Assembly: GCA_011109175.1 (NCBI GenBank)
Contig: RDEW01000006.1
Location: forward strand, 1,386,133-1,450,132
DNA: 64,000 nucleotides
Reading direction: 5' to 3'
Source of the DNA: Dicyema japonicum
Taxonomy: Eukaryota > Animalia > Dicyemida
Positions 15,645-59,469 of the stretch are shown here, piece after piece (position 1 is the stretch's first letter; each line of letters starts with the position of its first letter). The notes under the pieces were generated by a model, which was given only the letters and a program-made list of their open reading frames with translations, was not told the DNA's origin and did no database searches. A program made the translations under genes and the position numbers.

Positions 15645-16757
15645 ATGGACAAACACATATATACCCAAAAGACTACATGCTCTTCGTGCGGTTATGCTAA
15701 TGCACGCAAATATGGACTTTACTGCTCGTCTTGCTGTGACTTTTTCCACCTCGGATGCATAAAGATGTCTCAGCGGGCTGCATGCTCGCTCTGCCTGTGG
15801 AACTGCAGTGTCTGTATGGGCACTGGTCGGAAAGCCCAGAGGATCATTCCAAGCGAGCACATCGAACCGAATGAGCCTTCAGACTTCAATGATATAGACA
15901 ACCTCTTACTCTTCTTGTCGGATCTAGGGAAAGCCAGGAAGATCCCAATCAGGATCCTAAGACCCGTCCGGATCCCCTCTGCAATTGACGATGTTCTCAC
16001 GTCCGACGACTAGGAGGCCTGGCTAAAACTCCTCAGTTTCGCTCCGATGGCACTTGGAAATTCATTTATCGACTCAAAAGGAGATCAACGCAACACAGGA
16101 GAAAGTACGACACTTGGGAACTCCCGTTCCTCAAAAATGAAGAACATCCAGGTTTTCTATGTGCATTCTCTCACCAAGACGAAAGTCATGAAACCTAAAC
16201 ATCCTGATTCCAATCCTCCGGTTTTTTTGAATGGCCCGGACAAACTTGGAGAGAGTAAATTTTGTACTATTTGAAGGTGACGTCCGAGCGTCGTTGCTGT
16301 CATGGCTGCGACGCCTGAGGTGCTTGAACTACTCAGACGAAAACATAAGATTACCGTCCATTCGTCATTCGTGCATCCGGGAAATTTGACGACCGTCACC
16401 GAAGGCGAAGTGCGGCGCGGCATTTTGTCGTTTGCGGCGAGTAGCAGTGGAAGTCTCAATGGCTTGCGGCCAAGTCACACAACAAGTCACACCGAGTTCA
16501 ACAAGAAGACCCACTTGGTCCACTACTCTTCGCTCTGGCCATCGATGAAATTTTCCGCTCTATCAACACACAACTAAACCTCTGGTATATGATGACGCGC
16601 CACGATTGGAGGGCGCGAGAAAAGTTCATAACGTTTTGTCACATGTCGTGCCGGAACTACGAAACCTCGGACTTGAGATAAATATAAAGAAATCGAAGCT
16701 AATAAATATCACATACTCGGAGAGTGATTTTATTAACGTGGTCGAGTCTTTCAACTC
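15645..16757 (+). mobile_element. CRE-like non-LTR element, internally deleted, with N-terminal PHD finger
   Basis: CSSC..CSSCCDFFHLGC..WNCSVC; SFAASSSGSLNGLRP; VQQEDPLGP; LWYMMT (degenerate WYLDD); LGLEINIKK. Confidence 0.8.
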
Positions 16758-17090
16758 CTATTATGTCGATTATCATGATGGTTTCGTTCTGGTTGTGTTC
16801 ATTGTTCCCTATTATGGTGATTATCATGATGGTTTCGATCTTGGTTATGTGCTCATTGTTATCCCTATTATTTCGACTGTCATGATGGTTTCTGTGATGA
16901 CGATGATTATATGAGTTGCGACGAATAGCTCAGATAATAGTACGATTCCTTTAATTAATAATTTTTAAAAACCAATTAATCCAATCATTTTATGAATTAC
17001 CGAATGTTTTTAACATTTTATTATGAATTTATGGTTAACCATCAAATATATTTAATTTATATTAAATAATAATACATATAAACTTGAAAT
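16758..17090 (-). pseudogene. Truncated, frameshifted paralogue of the His-rich secreted-protein gene (upstream region, exon 1, intron 1 and first repeats)
   Basis: Reverse complement closely matches 42902-~43200; ATG at 16988; signal-peptide exon and intron retained; repeats frameshifted and cut off where the CRE fragment ends. Confidence 0.8.
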
Positions 17091-24722: not shown

Positions 24723-25370
24723 TATCCAGTTTCCACTGCTACAGAAACAGAGTCCATCCGGAATCAACATAAATGGTGGAAGACGTTAGCTGCAGTTATG
24801 AAAACAGCTCCAATGGAGTGGGGGAGAACAAATTATCCTTTTTCGTGACAGTCTGGCAATGGGCGCCATCTGAGACAGGTGGATCACATGATGACACTCT
24901 AATAGGAAGGGAAAGAGGAGGAACAAACAAAACAAACAACAAATTACCCACATAGCACCACATGGCGGCAAGCGACACGTGGTAATTAATTTAAAGGGAC
25001 TCGAGTCGCCTTAAAAGTTTTTTATATAATATTATTTGTGTAATATTTAAATAATAAAAAAATAGTTTCCCACCAATTTCGTCACTGAATTTTTTAATAT
25101 TAAAGCCTTCCTCGCCGCGTGACGCCATATGGTACTACGTGGCTAATTGGTTAAAGTTTTCTGTTTGTTTGTCTGTTTCTCCTTTTTCTCTTCCTATTAG
25201 AGTAGCGTCATGTGACCCACCTGTCCCGCCCAGTGTTTGGCTGGCACGAAAAAGGATCATTTTCCATCCCCCACTCCACTGGAGGGGTTTCCACAACTGC
25301 AACTATGGACGTTTTTTCCTTTAATGTTGATTCCGGATGGACTTTGTTTCTGTAGAAGTGGAAATAGATA
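24723..25370. mobile_element. Foldback/MITE-like element with ~250-bp imperfect terminal inverted arms
   Basis: 24723-~24980 is the diverged reverse complement of ~25110-25370 (e.g. CTACAGAAACAGAGTCCATCCGGAATCAACAT vs ATGTTGATTCCGGATGGACTTTGTTTCTGTAG), around an AT-rich spacer of ~130 bp. Confidence 0.8.
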
Positions 25371-26010: not shown

Positions 26011-26887
26011 TCAATCAAAATTCCCAATAAGATACATAAATACAATTCCAACAATAGTCGAACAAATAAGCTTAACAATATCCCTGATAGAACTACAGCC
26101 ATCCTTAGACAAATGTCCGAGCATTGAGACAGTCCCAATGTAAATAAATCCACCTGCCGTAAATGGAATCAATGAATCTCCAATAAAAGTACTTAAATTT
26201 CCAAGCATAAACGACATGAGTGTTCCAATAATTGCCCCAATAGCTGATATAAACTGCAGGAATATAGCATTTCTCTTTGAACAGTTGGCATTAATAAGAG
26301 CTGCAAAGTCCCCGATTTCATGAGGGATCTCATGACACATAATTGCTATTGATGTAGTCATTCCCATAGAGGTACTGTGCATAAATGAGGATCCAATGGC
26401 CAGTCCGTCAGTAATATTATGAGCAAAGTCCCCAATAAAGCTTATATACCCTTGAGAGGTCATCTTTTTAACAGGAATAACTTTTTTCTTGGAATTCCTC
26501 TGACGAGCCTTTTTAGTATTTGTATCATTCTCCACATAAGAATCAGTATATTCTTCAACGTGGCTGAGGGTTTCTCCCAAAAAATAACAAATGGTTTTTT
26601 CGATGGTAAAAAAGGCGTAAAGACCAAAGAGAATGACAAATCCAGGACAAAAGCCGTTAGAATTAGCAAAAGTGTGAGGTATCAAATGGAAGAAAGTGTC
26701 CGCTAACAAACTCCCAGAAGCAAATGCCAACATAATCTATATAATCATCAAACATGTACATCAAGTGACTTTTTGTGTTTAGGAGTATTATTAACATTTA
26801 TGAAAACAAGAATAATTACTGGAGTGTCCCAATTAATATGGCTGATAGAATAGATTGTGTCAAAGGACTATTCAGCAGACTTATCAT
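26011..26887 (-). CDS. ZIP zinc transporter, LIV-1 subfamily (SLC39A7/SLC39A13-like)
   Basis: MLAFASGSLLADTFFHLIPH, GDFAHNITDGLAIGSSF, HEIPHEIGDFA, PFTAGGFIYIGTV; upstream exon from ATG 26887 and one tiny intron near 26737-26759. Confidence 0.9.
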
Positions 26888-42077: not shown

Positions 42078-43007
42078 CTTTATAATATACTACCTCCATC
42101 CATTCTACACACTTCTCTTCAAGCTTTGGGAACTTTGGTTTATGTGCAGCTTTAATTACAGATATTATGAGAATCTTTCAAAATAGTGTCTTTATACAGT
42201 AAAAGATTATTTATGTTTTTCTCGATATCGTATTTCGATAGAAATGCAAGAATATATTATCTAACTCATGACACGAAATAACATCATTTTTTGTTTATAA
42301 TTAACAATTTGAGTTTTTTCATTAAAAGTCAGGCGAGCGTCCACGAAAAACATTCGAAGATATGTGTTAATAAAATTTTTAATTTTTTTCCAATTTTTAT
42401 TAAAAATAAAATAAAATTATAAATTGGCCAATTAATAAGGAGAATAGGAATTTTTCCTAGAAAATTTTACGAAATGTGGCCAATTGAAAGATTGACAAAT
42501 TTGCGAGAGGTCGACTATGTGTATCCAGAGTATATATCTTTCAGAGAGATATCCGTGAATAAATTCCCCTTCTGAAATTATTTGGAGTTCTCCGCCATAT
42601 CCCCTTACCTGTTTTTTTCTGAATACAAAGTAAGTACTGGAAAGAAATAAAAACAAGGAGTTGGGACAGATTTGAATGCATCTACTCTTGTATCTACCTT
42701 AAGTCTGCAATCAGTAGTGTCAACTCCAGAACTTTGCTATTGAAATTGAAATTTATTTCACAGTTAAAGACAAAAACAAGAAATTATTTTATTTATTTAA
42801 CAACCCGAAAAGGGAACACTAAAAAAGAAGGAGTAAACCAACTAATTAAGTGATCCCGGTACGCCTCAACAGAATCAAGAAGTTTTTCAATTATAAAAAA
42901 TATTTCAAGTTTATATGTATTATATTTTTTTAATATAAATTAAATAATATTTGATGGTTAACCATAAATTCATAATAAAATGTTATAAACATTCGGTAAT
43001 TCATAAA

Positions 43008-43867
43008 ATGATTGGATTAATTGGTTTTTAAAAATTACTAATTAAAGGAATCGTACTATTATCTGAGCTATTCGTCGCCAACTCATATAATCATCGTCAT
43101 CACAGAAACCATCATGACAATCACCATAATAGGGATAACAATGAACACAACCAAGATCGAAACCATCATGATAATCACCATAATAAAGACAACAATGAGA
43201 ACAACCAAGAACGAGACAATCATGACAATCACCATAATAGGGACAACAATGAGCACAACCAAGATCGAGATCATCATGACAATCACCATAATAGGGACAA
43301 CAGTGAGCACAACCAAGATCGAAACCATCATGATAATCACCATAATAAAGACAACAATGAGAACAACCAAGATCGAGACCATCATGACAATCACCACAAT
43401 AGGGACAACAATGAGCACAACCAAGATCGAGATCATCATGACAATCACCATAATAGGGACAACAATGAGCACAACCAAGATCGAAACCATCATGACAATC
43501 GCCATCATAATGAGCACAACGAACATAGAAGCCATCACAATGATAATGCCAATAAAAATCGTACTAAAGATGAGCATAATCGGCAAAACCATAACAATGC
43601 ATATATTAGTGATTTTATTTATTTAGAACGACCACCACCATAACAATCGCAGTGTAAACCACCACAATGTAAAGTCAATTTTAATTAAAGTCACGTGATT
43701 ATTCTTCCTGTAAATATTGCATTTACTATAAAAGCAAGGGACTCCAATATAGAGTAGTTAGTTTAATAATTCAGGCTTATTGGGCGAATGAGGATATCGA
43801 CGTGAAGAGACTTGCCGAACAGTACTGCGTTAATAATGGAGAATGTCCCCCCACTTTGAATTCTTGA
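43008..43867 (+). CDS. Putative secreted His/Asn/Asp-rich repeat protein with C-terminal four-Cys domain (~254 aa)
   Basis: Exons 43008-43023, 43048-43598, 43627-43668, 43691-43753 and 43775-43867 splice in frame via 24, 28 (GC-AG), 22 and 21-nt introns. Protein: MIGLIGIVLLSELFVANS + (HHDNHHNRDNNEHNQDRN)x7 + SRDYSSCKYC...YCVNNGECPPTLNS. Confidence 0.72.
43110..43487 (+). repeat. Coding tandem repeat, 7 x 54 bp
   Basis: Unit CATCATGACAATCACCATAATAGGGACAACAATGAGCACAACCAAGATCGAAAC; no indels; unit-end codons cycle AAC/GAC/GAT. Confidence 0.95.
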
Positions 43868-44402
43868 ATTCATTAACTTACTAATCTACTAACAGGGATT
43901 TATTGGGTTATAATAAAGATTTATTGGTGATTTTCAAATCTTTAGAATATTTGGTATTTCATTATTATTACATTTTCTGAATAACTTAGTCGGTGAACCT
44001 TCCTAAATGATATTTACCGATTGAATGAGTTAAAATTAATAACTTCTTCTGTGAAGGGACCAACCGCTTTCGAGGTCTTTTCAGGTAAAAGGGCACAATC
44101 ATAACCCACGTACCAACGACATGAGCATAGATGCCTCAATGAAATACATGAACCACATTATAGTAAAGTTGGATGTTAAAGAGAAAGTCAGGGATCACCT
44201 AATACTTTTCCTATATTGGTGATTATCAGTTATGACATTTGATGCACAAATTAGCTTCGTGCAATCGACCATTAATAGTCACGTAGAGAATCTTGGTTTA
44301 CATTTGATTTGTTTCATTATTGACGGTATTCCTATGATTTATTGTCATATTTAGTTTTGGTGCCAAAAAATTGATAAAAATATCTTGTGATCCCAAAATA
44401 AA

Positions 44403-45441
44403 TTAAAAAGTATTATTAGAGTTCTGATAGTAGTTATATGAAATATTAGAGTTTTCATAGTCAATGAATTGATTTGATGGACTAAATGTAATATAGAGAA
44501 CAAACTGTGAATAATCTGCGTATTGATTAGAACTAAAATATATAAAATAGAATAAACAAATCATATTGATACATGGTGGGAGCATAGTTGCAGTAATATT
44601 GAGAATATTCCTGGTAATTCACATTCTGATTGGTTTGAACAGGCTGTGTTGATTCTCTAAGAGAAACAAATGAATATTACTGACAAGCTGGACTTTTAAA
44701 TTAAAGACAGGCTTTTTATTCCTAAAATTACTATCAAATTTTACTAACATTAATTTTTTGACTTTTTGTCTTGAATTTTTAAAGTAATTACTGATTTGGC
44801 GAATTGTAAGATAGGTTACTTTGGCGATCTCTTCCTTCTCGCATTCGTTTGGGTATTCATTCTCTTCAAAGTACTTTTTCATGTACTCCCGGGCAGATTC
44901 GGGAATGTTGTAAGAATACCTCTCCCCGTAGATATACTCATTGGTGGTGGATTTTTCAGTTTGAATCTGTGCCACGTGAGTCCCGTGTCTGTTATTCCCT
45001 GAAATATTCTCTCTTCTTTAAATGACTTGAACCATAAAAGTGTTAGTTTGTGGTACAGACTTTGATTAAAACTTCCCGTCTTAATAAAATCACGTGCAAG
45101 TTTGAATTCTTGATTATTTATCATTTTTCCACAATTGGAATAGGATTAGTTTCCCTTCTCTTCATTGTGAAACACAAACTAATTTCTACATTTATAACCA
45201 CTATTTTGAAAAATAATACTTTATCCGTCATATCATATTTTGTCAGCTTTCTGATATCAACATATGCTACAAGACATATCTCTCTAAGGGATCACAACAT
45301 CAATCCTTTTTAATAATACGATTGCCCCAGTCAGCACCAACATCCTAAAAGTTATGTTGGATACGGACTATTTGCCTTGATGAATACTATATAAATGTAC
45401 AATGATTAGATTGGTAATTTCATTTAATTCGTTTTTGACAT
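44403..45441 (-). CDS. Divergent SIX/sine oculis-class homeobox gene (boundaries approximate)
   Basis: SIX-domain-like KLTLLW..HRFKLKNPPPMSI directly precedes homeodomain GERYSYNIPESAREYMKKYFEENEYPNECEKEEIAKVTYLTIRQISNYFKNSRQK (K50); one apparent frameshift; Ser/Tyr/Asn-rich tail. Confidence 0.75.
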
Positions 45442-55140: not shown

Positions 55141-57907
55141 ATGGATGAACTAACTGCTAAATTCAAATCAATATATACACGAGTAAGTTTACGTGGACTT
55201 AAATATAGGCTCAGGAATATCCTAAATCTCAGTGAGGGAGTCATATAGTAACATTTAGATGTCTGTCACTCATTCCCACTGTTCTCGAACATGTCATTGA
55301 CTACTCACTTGAATCTCCCATAGTGAATAAGACGTTTTCACTAAAGTACAACGTGCTATATATTAGAAACAACTCCTCTGAGTTAGCTGATATTGAAGGG
55401 TACCTTCGCAGGTCCAACTGCAGTCAAATATCTATTTCTATACAAAAAGAAGTGTTGGGAAAGAAATTCCGTTTTAGTCTTAAACCTGGGACCGAAGTTG
55501 TTTTCTCCGTGCAATTCAACCCAAAATTTTGTGGAAGTGATAAACAAATCGTCAAATTTGTCTCCAATCTATGTTCTGATATATCAATTTCAATCAATTT
55601 GGAATGTTTAATAAACCCATTACTGAATCAATTAGTGAGGTCATCAGAACCTCCATCAAACGCAGACCTGATCTATTACATTCCTTCAATATCAGCCGTC
55701 CGTCCTAGAAGGAAAGGGTACTATCATATATAACCTTAGGGGACCGCCCAGGAATATACTATTCCAGCCAAGATACACGGGTAATATTGAGGATGAGGAT
55801 TTAATACAAATGGCTGCTACTGGGAACTATGATCCAATTCTCTATCTATTTAAAAATGTAAGAGATTTTGGTGAGGTAAGGGACTGACCCCAACATTGTA
55901 CAAGAAACTACTTGGGATAGCTGTTAGACTGGACCACTATGTGGGACAGATTGAAATGTCCGCCCATGATATTTCCTCAGTAATGGATAAATTCAAAGAG
56001 GGATACTTTGAGGTTGAGTTTCCTGGAATTGTGGATGAGGATTATATAATCGGTCCTGGGGCGAACGATATTTACGTGGAATACTATAATGGGGATAGAT
56101 TGCTGTCCTCGTGTTTGTGTGAATATGTTAAGATTGACAAGGAAGAAGGAATTGTTAGAGTTCGTCCTTCCCTCTTACCAGGAGAAGTTGGTTCATTTAC
56201 TAGAGCCCAACTAAGAGTGAAACAATCAATGTATTATATTTTATTATTCAGAGTTCCAATGAAGTTCTCCTTGTTTGGAATAGACAGACTCTGTGATCAT
56301 ACCATCAATGATGGTTTTATTGTTTGTTATTCATAGTTTTGTTTCCAGTGTCAATCATTCCCGATAGACCATTCGTCGTCCAAGCAATTGATATCCAGGG
56401 TATTTTGCTTTATCAAAGTAGGCCGACCTTTTATTAATTTTTATAATAAAAAATTAAATTGGCGGCAAAAGATGGCGGTTTGTAACATTTTGGAGGGAAA
56501 ATATGGTAGACTTCCATTTATTCTTTTTGGTCCCCCAGGTTGGTTTGGTTGTTATTTGAGGGACTGGTAAGACCACCACAGTGATTGAGAGTATCCTTCA
56601 AATATTCAAATTGATTCCTTCTAGTGTTATTCTAGTGACTGCTCAAACCAACAAATCAGTGGACCAATTGGTGTGATTTGGTGTTATTCCAGGCTCTCAG
56701 ACTAATAAAGACTGGACAGTTTAAGATGGACGAGATTATTCGTTATAACTCCCAAATGAGGTCTCCAGAGGTTATTGTAGTGTGTATTGTAGGATGTTGA
56801 CATAGAACTGAAACCATATTGTTGTGATGCTATTTTATACTCACGAGTGCAATCATTGAGGATAGTATGTACTACATTTGTAAAATCATCTGTATTTTCA
56901 TCAATTAATGATGGGAAATTCTTTACTCATTTGTTTGTGGATGAGGCCAGTCAGTGCGCAGAGGCTAGCACTCTTATATCAATAAATCTACTCAAATCTG
57001 ACGGAAAGGTACCTTTAAACTTATTGTAGCTAATATTGGCTGGTGATCCTCATCAACTGGGTCCTCTTACCACTATTACCAACGACTATGTGGCTTCTAT
57101 TATTACAAACTCATTACTACACAGACTTATTGGCAATAAGCTATACAGTAAGGTTACTCACAAACATACTGAGTTTGGGGGATATAATCCTATTCTGGTT
57201 ATTTTGTGTATTTACTCCCAGATCGTTAAGTTGGTCGAAAATTATAGGAATTTTGAAGTTCTTGTGAGTTTCTTTTCCAATTTATTTTATGATAATGAGT
57301 TAATAACAAAGACGTGTTTGGCTGACAATAATAGGTGTCATGACTTTCAGTTTTTGAGAAACAAAAATTTTCCTCTTTTGATTCACGGAGTTTGTGGACA
57401 GGACTACTTGCCTGAGAATTCTACATCATTTGTTAATGTTTATGAAGCCATTACCGTCATTGATTACATTAAACAGATTATTAATCATGGAATTCCTCCT
57501 CATTTGATTGCTGTTATTTCCTTCTACAAGAAACAGGTCATGTTCATCAAACGGATGCTTGCCAATTTATCCACGGCCGAGGAACAGATTGAGTGTCAGA
57601 CCATTGAAAAGTTTCAGGGATCTGAGAAAACTGTCGTCATTCTCTCTGCCGTTGCTTTGTTTGTGACTTTTAGGTGAGGACAGCCAGGAAACACACCACC
57701 TATGACAAGAAATTCTCATTAAAGTTTTTGTTTAACGCAAAGAGGTTTAATGTGGCCATTTCGAGGGCCATTTCAATGCTTATTGTGATTGGTGATCCTA
57801 ATGTTATGAAATGCGTAATTTTTGTGTTATTCTAGAATAATGAATGGTCAGAGTTGCTTAATTACTGCAGGAAGAATAATTCCTATATTGGATGTAGTAT
57901 TGATTAG
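55141..57907 (+). CDS. MOV10: MOV10/Armitage/SDE3-like UPF1-family RNA helicase
   Basis: LPFILFGPP/GTGKTTTVIESILQ, HLFVDEASQ, LAGDPHQLGP, KLVENYRN, FSNLFYDNEL, TIEKFQGSEK, KRFNVAISRA..LIVIGDP; many tiny introns; stop at 57905-57907. MOV10 versus MOV10L1 is not resolved. Confidence 0.88.
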
Positions 57908-58200
57908 ATATCACATTTTTTATTTCTTGGTTAATTAATCTTCTCTATTACTATTCCTTTATTATTTAATGGACCTGTTTTCCATCATTCCTACACAAAC
58001 CGCCGGCTTCATATATAAGACAACTTTTATCGCCTTCTGTCTGAGAGACCTTCCTTCTTCCTATAGGCGAGTGGGTGAAAACCGTCGATCTGGTCACCAC
58101 AGATATAAAACGCAAATCTTAAGTCCAAGACATTATGAAACACAAAATAAGCTCCCCGTTTGGGACGGTGTTGAATCAGGCTCCAATCTCCGGAGATTTT

Positions 58201-58896
58201 GAGAATTGGAAGGAGAAACAAATAAGGACGATTACAAGTCTCCCTCAGATGGATTGGTGTCCGAATCAATGAGAATTGGAAAGAGGAACAAATAAGGACG
58301 ATTACAAGTCTCCCTCAGGTGGATGGTGTCCGAATCAATGAGAATTGGAAAGAGGAACAAATAAGGACGATTACAAGTCTCCTCAGGTGGATGGTGTCCG
58401 AATCAATGAGAATTGGAAAGAGGAACAAATAGGACGATTACAAGTCTCCCTCAGGTGGATGGTGTCCGAATCAATGAGAATTGGAAAGAGGAACAAATAA
58501 GGACGATTACAAGTCTCCCTCAGGTGGATGGTGTCCGAATCAATGAGAAATTGGAAAGAGGAACAAATAAGGACGATTACAAGTCTCCCTCAGGTGGATG
58601 GTGTCCGAATCAATGAGAATTGGAAAGAGGAACAAATAAGGACGATTACAAGTCTCCCTCAGGTGGATGTGTCCGAATCAATGAGAATTGGAAAGAGGAA
58701 CAAATAAGGACGATTACAAGTCTCCCTCAGGTGGATGGTGTCCGAATCAATGGAATTGGAAGGAAGGGAACAAATAAGGACGATTACAAGTCTCCCTCAG
58801 GTGGATGGTGTCCGAATCAATGAGAATTGGAAGAGGAACAAATAAGGACGATTACAAGTCTCCCTCAGGTGGATGGTGTCCGAATCAATGAGAATT
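58201..58896 (+). repeat. Tandem array, about 10 x 69 bp
   Basis: Unit GAGAATTGGAAAGAGGAACAAATAAGGACGATTACAAGTCTCCCTCAGGTGGATGGTGTCCGAATCAAT; copies differ mostly by 1-nt indels. Confidence 0.95.
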
Positions 58897-59469
58897 CGAG
58901 AAGAGAGTTTAGAATCTTCATGACAAAACACTAAGATACGTGAGGAAAAAACATCCGCAAAGCAGAAAATTTCATTGGCAGGCCTGTGACGTATCATCAA
59001 GATACATTCGACTGCCGAACGACAATCGATGTGTTGGTAAAAATAGGGTGGCGTCCTGAGGATATATGCAGCTATAGTGAGACTAGTAAGGAAAAATAAT
59101 GAGGTATGTTGGTCGAGTAAAATTAATTATTTTTTTCAGTAAAGACAATTTTACAGGGTTTTCACTTCAAAGTGAGAACTTATTCACATCAATGTGAGAA
59201 TCATTCACATCAAAATGAGAATTATTTTAATTGAAATTAAATAAATTTTAATCTTTGTAACTATAAATATTAAAAAAATTGTCTGATGAATATAGGCGTT
59301 TTATTATTAATATGTATTCCAATGGTAGTAGTCTGGCGGAACTTGGCATCGGACAGGAGGGGATGGGAAAGGCTAATTAAGAGGATTGTTCGGACGCGGC
59401 ACGAATAGAATTATAGTTTATATGATTCTATGTAGTTGCTTATAATAATAATATTCCAATGGATCCACA

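Follow-up and report, generated by a model that had tools for sequence, protein, structure and literature searches.

The window, by which we mean the whole 64,000-nucleotide stretch of Dicyema japonicum DNA analysed here, contains a histidine-rich gene for which we predict five exons separated by four small introns. Its features are as follows.

43008 (ATG) to 43865-43867 (TGA), plus strand: histidine-rich gene, five exons, 765 nt coding, 254 aa
43008-43023, plus strand: exon 1, 16 coding nt, a length that is the same in every relative modelled at the 5′ end
43024-43047, plus strand: intron 1, GT-AG, 24 nt, phase 1, containing an in-frame TAA
43048-43598, plus strand: exon 2, remainder of the signal peptide (to ~43085), then a His/Asn/Asp/Arg-rich region
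43110-43487, plus strand: seven tandem 54-nt (18-aa) units without indels, with a degenerate eighth to ~43541
43599-43626, plus strand: intron 2, GC-AG, 28 nt, phase 0
43627-43668, plus strand: exon 3, 42 nt
43669-43690, plus strand: intron 3, GT-AG, 22 nt, phase 0
43691-43753, plus strand: exon 4, first half of the Cys domain, with Cys210 and Cys213
43754-43774, plus strand: intron 4, GT-AG, 21 nt, phase 0, in frame
43775-43867, plus strand: exon 5, second half of the Cys domain, with Cys242 and Cys248 and then Pro, ending in TGA
43912-43917, plus strand: AATAAA polyadenylation-like signal

The open reading frame list for this locus gives just poly-Val/Ile and poly-Thr/Ile frames, as the first-pass annotation of this DNA had reported, and the gene is hidden from plain ORF calling because the introns of its family are only 21-29 nt long. 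That annotation had proposed a frame running from the ATG at 43008 through a 24-nt first intron and a GC-AG second intron; all of these coordinates were verified, and paralogues share the structure. The position of intron 1 is common to the genes on contigs C246, C323, C201, C345 and C376, the GC donor of intron 2 is retained in 4/4 other close copies that reach that point, and the genes on contigs C323 and C201 also carry an intron directly 5′ of the Cys domain. Judged from the window sequence alone, there are 106 in-frame splice solutions downstream, and we prefer the one proposed earlier because the paralogues single it out. Intron 4 lacks a stop, such that its retention would add 7 residues; its splicing is supported because in diverged paralogues the counterpart of this intron measures 23-25 nt or holds a stop, and must be spliced. 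All four public read runs are DNA contigs in which every intron is present, and we infer the splicing of the four introns from the paralogues. The intron sizes agree with those of cDNA-verified Dicyema introns, which average 26.2 +/- 1.9 nt (PMC2222250).

We searched the assembly (67,542,437 bases in 377 pieces) for copies of the gene. The published D. japonicum genome comprises 67.5 Mb in 377 scaffolds, with a mean intron of 38 bp, 49% repeats and 1.24% heterozygosity (PMC6736024). Five further near-identical stretches were found: one at C334:1450161, which starts just beyond the end of the window, one on contig C157, two in tandem on contig C319, and one inside the window.

42902-44347, plus strand: duplicated block common to the close copies, ~1.45 kb, comprising the gene with ~100 nt upstream and ~480 nt downstream
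16757-17090, minus strand: second, partial copy, ATG at 16988, 5′ part with frameshifts, truncated ~2 repeat units into the array

One C319 copy is intact and encodes 182 aa, while the other has a premature stop and continues into an assembly gap. The C157 copy carries frameshifts, and the C334:1450161 copy, in which one intron has an AT donor, stays open provided that its micro-exons are spliced. The number of repeat units varies widely among the close copies, some of which may be uncollapsed alleles; one C319 copy and the C334:1450161 copy are 98% identical over 1.5 kb. In two other copies, exon 3 is divided into micro-exons of 27 nt and 12 nt around a 23-nt intron, of which the window gene retains only the first three bases, GTA (43654-43656). 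This remnant points to imprecise intron loss and leaves the GT at 43654 as a possible alternative donor, with a 37-nt intron to 43690 that is also in frame.

That one close copy of the six is truncated, one frameshifted, one stopped prematurely and one equipped with an AT donor, in surroundings rich in retrotransposons, raises the question of whether the family is real but the window copy a silent or decaying duplicate. We think this improbable: the frame, splice sites, upstream motif and poly(A) signal of the window gene are all intact, and among the close copies pN is below pS. The assembly moreover differs from the reads by single-base indels near the gene, and some of the breaks in the copies may be assembly errors.

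Read depth in the DNA contigs is ~4-6 times single-haplotype depth over the gene, as against >1000 times background for an 85-nt element (42804-42888) that lies ~120 nt upstream of the ATG and directly outside the duplicated block. The first-pass annotation had allowed that the locus might prove to be part of a high-copy satellite or a transposon; the low depth and the presence of only six close copies rule this out.

Several other features lie in the window. Convergent with the histidine-rich gene is a homeodomain ORF (44619-45017, minus strand; Pfam Homeodomain, E 1.9e-11). At 44689, 44923 and further on, the DNA contigs contain single-base insertions relative to the assembly, which may therefore have indel errors in this part. 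A ZIP zinc transporter exon (26014-26736, minus strand; Pfam Zip, E 1e-45) lies 16 kb from the histidine-rich gene and is probably a chance neighbour. Further away are an exon with a Pfam AAA_12 match, a Upf1-like helicase C-terminal domain (57030-57674, plus strand; E 1e-28), a tandem repeat with a 68-69 nt period, ~10 copies and 96% matches (58200-58905), and a long imperfect inverted repeat that is MITE-like, with arms of 47-79 nt in three pieces (24730-25364).

The predicted protein contains 63 Asn, 50 His, 31 Asp and 22 Arg among its 254 residues. It opens with a hydrophobic leader of ~18 residues (11-residue hydropathy of 2.1-2.7 over the first windows), with small residues at -3/-1 ahead of Tyr19, the putative cleavage site of the signal peptide. 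A low-complexity tract of 186 aa (31% Asn, 27% His, 15% Asp, 10% Arg) contains 20 HH pairs and two N-glycosylation sequons. By its hydropathy leader and 27% His, the protein has the signal peptide and His-rich repeat that characterise secreted His-rich metal-binding proteins. The high His and Asp content, together with a signal peptide that would also fit a granule lumen, could indicate a matrix protein that stores metal or mineral in an internal body, such as the larval refringent body, or a heavy-metal sink. We regard this as very unlikely, as mineral matrix proteins commonly have long runs of acidic residues or Ser, which this protein lacks, and His content is low in several relatives.

Seven indel-free units had been described in the array, and both the count and the lack of indels held in Tandem Repeats Finder (TRF; period 54, 7.5 copies, 89% matches, 0% indels), but the units are not all identical, differing at 12 variable alleles. 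The unit is built of His, Asn, Asp, Arg and Glu, with no Ala, Gly or Tyr. Within the repeat there was no significant synonymous excess (7/22 alleles synonymous, 5.0 expected, p = 0.21), and only composition seems to be kept there. We also weighed whether the locus might be a non-coding minisatellite, part of a transposon, or a gene read in a different frame (poly-Thr/Ile, poly-Val/Ile, or minus strand 43045-43563), given that those frames are open across the array. This we consider barely credible: the array is flanked by a signal-peptide exon and a Cys domain that are both conserved, copy number by depth is low, and 6/12 alleles are synonymous in the His frame against 2/12 in the other open frames. 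The minus-strand frame of 173 codons, antisense to the array, encodes Cys/His/Asp/Gly repeats with a metallothionein-like look; with 2/12 alleles synonymous and no sign of selection, we treated it as a shadow frame rather than a gene.

The first-pass annotation had suggested that a search with the C-terminal domain might uncover a gene family. Searching the genome with the Cys domain bore this out, yielding seven diverged loci beyond the close copies. The family thus numbers 13 loci in the genome: the window gene, five near-identical copies and the seven diverged loci, some of them broken.

Contig C246: three diverged loci, each with a His-rich tract and one domain; one intact, 155 aa
Contig C376: diverged locus with one domain and almost no tract
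Contig C323: diverged locus with one long domain, four short ones and linkers rich in Arg, Asn and Asp; as assembled, it carries frameshifts and a premature stop
Contig C201, first locus (C201a): diverged locus with two short domains and one long; one frameshift
Contig C201, second locus (C201b), and contig C345: diverged loci with a signal peptide and one long domain, 101 aa
42955-42963 in the window, plus strand: upstream motif TGGYKAMCC, 35-46 nt 5′ of the start context
L050:4538-4560 and L047:4164-4188, minus strand: GT-TG introns, 23 and 25 nt

In all modelled family genes, a 16-nt first coding exon is followed by a phase-1 intron, and a phase-0 intron divides the domain shortly after C-x2-C. 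The 3′ flanks of the paralogues resemble one another. The domain-splitting intron is GT-TG in domain 4 of the C323 gene and domain 2 of the C201a gene, where the window gene has GT-AG at the homologous position; that a GT-TG intron is common to domains so diverged suggests that it is spliced. The motif TGGYKAMCC, present at 12/13 family loci, is a probable promoter element; a genome scan returned 24 matches, 12 of them family members, against 1 for a reversed control. The twelve other sites, whose spacing to an ATG context is the same (contigs C1, C13, C46, C146, C223, C318, C323:1466213, C329, C351 (two), C356 and C373), may mark further family members or co-regulated genes.

Across exon 5 of the diverged paralogues, pN ranges from 0.24 to 0.55 and pS, which is near saturation, from 0.47 to 1.0, with pN < pS in 28/28 diverged pairs (the pairs are not independent). 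In exons 4-5 of the pooled close copies, 7/111 synonymous sites changed against 6/462 non-synonymous sites. On these counts the Cys domain is shown to be kept under purifying selection, and the comparison of pN with pS is the main evidence for protein coding, which we consider real with high confidence. Across the family, what is conserved is the four-Cys domain, which occurs in one to four tandem copies and also in a longer form; the His array was added recently, is variable and is missing from several paralogues. The first-pass annotation had placed the function in the array, but in the family comparison it is the domain that stands out as conserved. The tract is not essential to the family, because repeat number varies and several relatives have little or no tract.

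The domain takes two forms, a short one of C-x2-C-x~28-C-x5-C-P (C-x2-C-x28-C-x5-C in the window gene) and a long one of C-x2-C-x48-C-x5-C. The C-x2-C and C-x5-C spacings are invariant in 11/11 short domains seen and in 4/4 long domains. Profile similarity between short and long forms was not significant (E 0.63 and 0.1), and their proposed kinship draws on gene structure and flanks instead of protein similarity. Searches outside the genome were run exon by exon. Pfam gave no match at E up to 10, nor did the exon queries match PDB sequences or the ESM Atlas; an exhaustive profile search of 1.84 billion protein representatives found no match, and in a length-limited search of 5.8 billion clustered proteins none of 1084 candidates qualified as a homologue at E 0.001. 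No homology was found to the named His-rich families HRP2, histatin, HBP and preCol, and exon 2 had no Pfam match. In the collections searched, the family appears to have no detectable relatives outside the D. japonicum genome. These blank searches and the conservation among paralogues back the earlier description of a gene that is hidden, spliced and specific to its lineage, that has a signal peptide and that lies outside known families.

In saposins, the terminal cysteines are spaced C-x2-C and C-x5-C and form two outer disulfides. The family domains have this same spacing, which, together with their tandem layout, recalls saposins without the central disulfide; we treat this as a lead only, with no test in its support. 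The family could then be a reduced saposin-like (SAPLIP) lineage whose Cys domain binds lipid or membranes (in uptake of urine lipid, or with an antimicrobial or lytic role), whose tandem forms are prosaposin-like polyproteins, and whose His/Arg-rich tracts are pH-sensitive pro-pieces or linkers. Like SAPLIPs of the SapB_1, SapB_2 and prosaposin type, the family is predicted to be secreted and helical, and it has both tandem domains (4+1 and 2+1 in the C323 and C201 genes) and single-domain genes; the long form, with 48 residues between its second and third cysteines, closes with a hydrophobic pattern resembling that of saposins. Among parasites, SAPLIPs are in use (PMC3184995), as are saposin-like folds within secreted families that evolve fast (PMC13552887). 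The saposin B domain, however, has six conserved cysteines in three disulfides within a bundle of four or five helices (PMC3184995), whereas both the short and long forms have four, and the short domain of ~40 aa is half a Sap domain. Neither SapB_1 nor SapB_2 matched any exon at E up to 10, nor did they match anywhere in the genome, a scan whose controls were uninformative. AlphaFold, given the form that reads through intron 4, placed helices around both cysteine pairs in a poor, low-confidence model (pLDDT 59). No saposin stood among the PDB sequence matches or among those of the structure searches, which were uninformative. Weighing these points, we judge a saposin-like origin rather unlikely.

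The arrangement of a small disulfide module after a low-complexity, pro-like region would also suit the precursor of a secreted signal, whether a life-stage pheromone or density cue or a modulator of host cells, with the Cys module as ligand and the His tract governing storage in and release from acidic granules. Basic linkers do separate the tandem modules, and duplication with divergence is typical of interaction proteins. Since the window gene has no dibasic or furin-type site directly 5′ of the domain, and no similarity to known peptide hormones emerged from the searches, we find a signal precursor quite unlikely.

The reading we favour, if tentatively, is a surface-coat or adhesive protein at the interface with host or seawater in which the His tract acts as a pH/metal switch, by analogy with known His-rich proteins. 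Dicyemids inhabit the renal sacs of cephalopods, and their larvae exit into seawater. Mussel preCol His domains, squid-beak HBPs and histatins behave in ways that depend on pH and metals. The calculated net charge of the mature dicyemid chain is approximately +16 at pH 5.8, the value for octopus urine, -3 at pH 6.5 and -16 at pH 8.1, that of seawater. Renal-sac fluid of Octopus vulgaris is at ~pH 6 and as low as 5.8 (PMC5357659), the host of D. japonicum being O. sinensis. On entering the secretory pathway, the protein would form two disulfides from its four cysteines, stapling a small helical module that could specifically bind a partner, itself or a surface, while a disordered His tract would act as the pH- and metal-dependent switch. 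In urine the cationic tract might adhere electrostatically to anionic surfaces, either the parasite's own ciliated coat or the renal epithelium of the host. At a pH near neutral or higher, the 50 histidines of the tract might coordinate Zn/Cu and could serve to cross-link a coat or gel. From its composition, the protein may bind metal, adhere or template mineral, as the first-pass annotation had proposed. Against a switch, any His-rich protein shifts charge near pH 6 and the match to urine pH may be chance; the tract is variable, little developed or absent in several relatives, and many copies are broken; and the repeat shows no synonymous excess, while the fold was modelled poorly.

Plasmodium HRP2, histatins, squid-beak HBPs and mussel preCol His domains likewise combine a signal peptide with His-rich tandem repeats, likely disorder and pH/metal behaviour. 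The likeness is one of analogy: no sequence relation was found, the dicyemid unit lacks Ala, Gly and Tyr, and its array is joined to a four-Cys domain and is recent within its own family. Aphid bicycle proteins (PMC13552887) and schistosome micro-exon gene (MEG) products resemble this family in being secreted by parasites, encoded by lineage-specific multigene families that evolve fast, and identifiable from gene structure rather than sequence, with small in-frame exons. Unlike bicycle proteins, the dicyemid family has a C-x2-C motif with no paired C-Y-C architecture and no structural match; compared with both groups it has far fewer genes and exons, most coding length in one 551-nt exon, and no sign that its products are delivered into host cells.

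Orphan His-rich secreted families are common in parasites. This kind of protein (secreted, with His-rich repeats and a small Cys domain, in a fast-evolving parasite family) is already known, while the family and the domain are without record in the collections and literature searched, where no paper dealing with dicyemid proteins of the histidine-rich or saposin-like kind came up. What is new here is that the loci form one family with a common gene structure and upstream motif, with the Cys domain as its conserved core. That domain offers a new small disulfide domain for structure work, and a phylum-level orphan secreted family provides a candidate set for the host-parasite interface. More speculatively, and in our view doubtfully, the four-Cys module could be a minimal saposin-derived or wholly new fold, whose fusion to an expandable His array would give a glue or coat, triggered by pH and cured by metal, functioning between the host's acidic urine and seawater. 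If true, this would give a first molecular handle on how dicyemids attach to the cephalopod kidney or survive dispersal.
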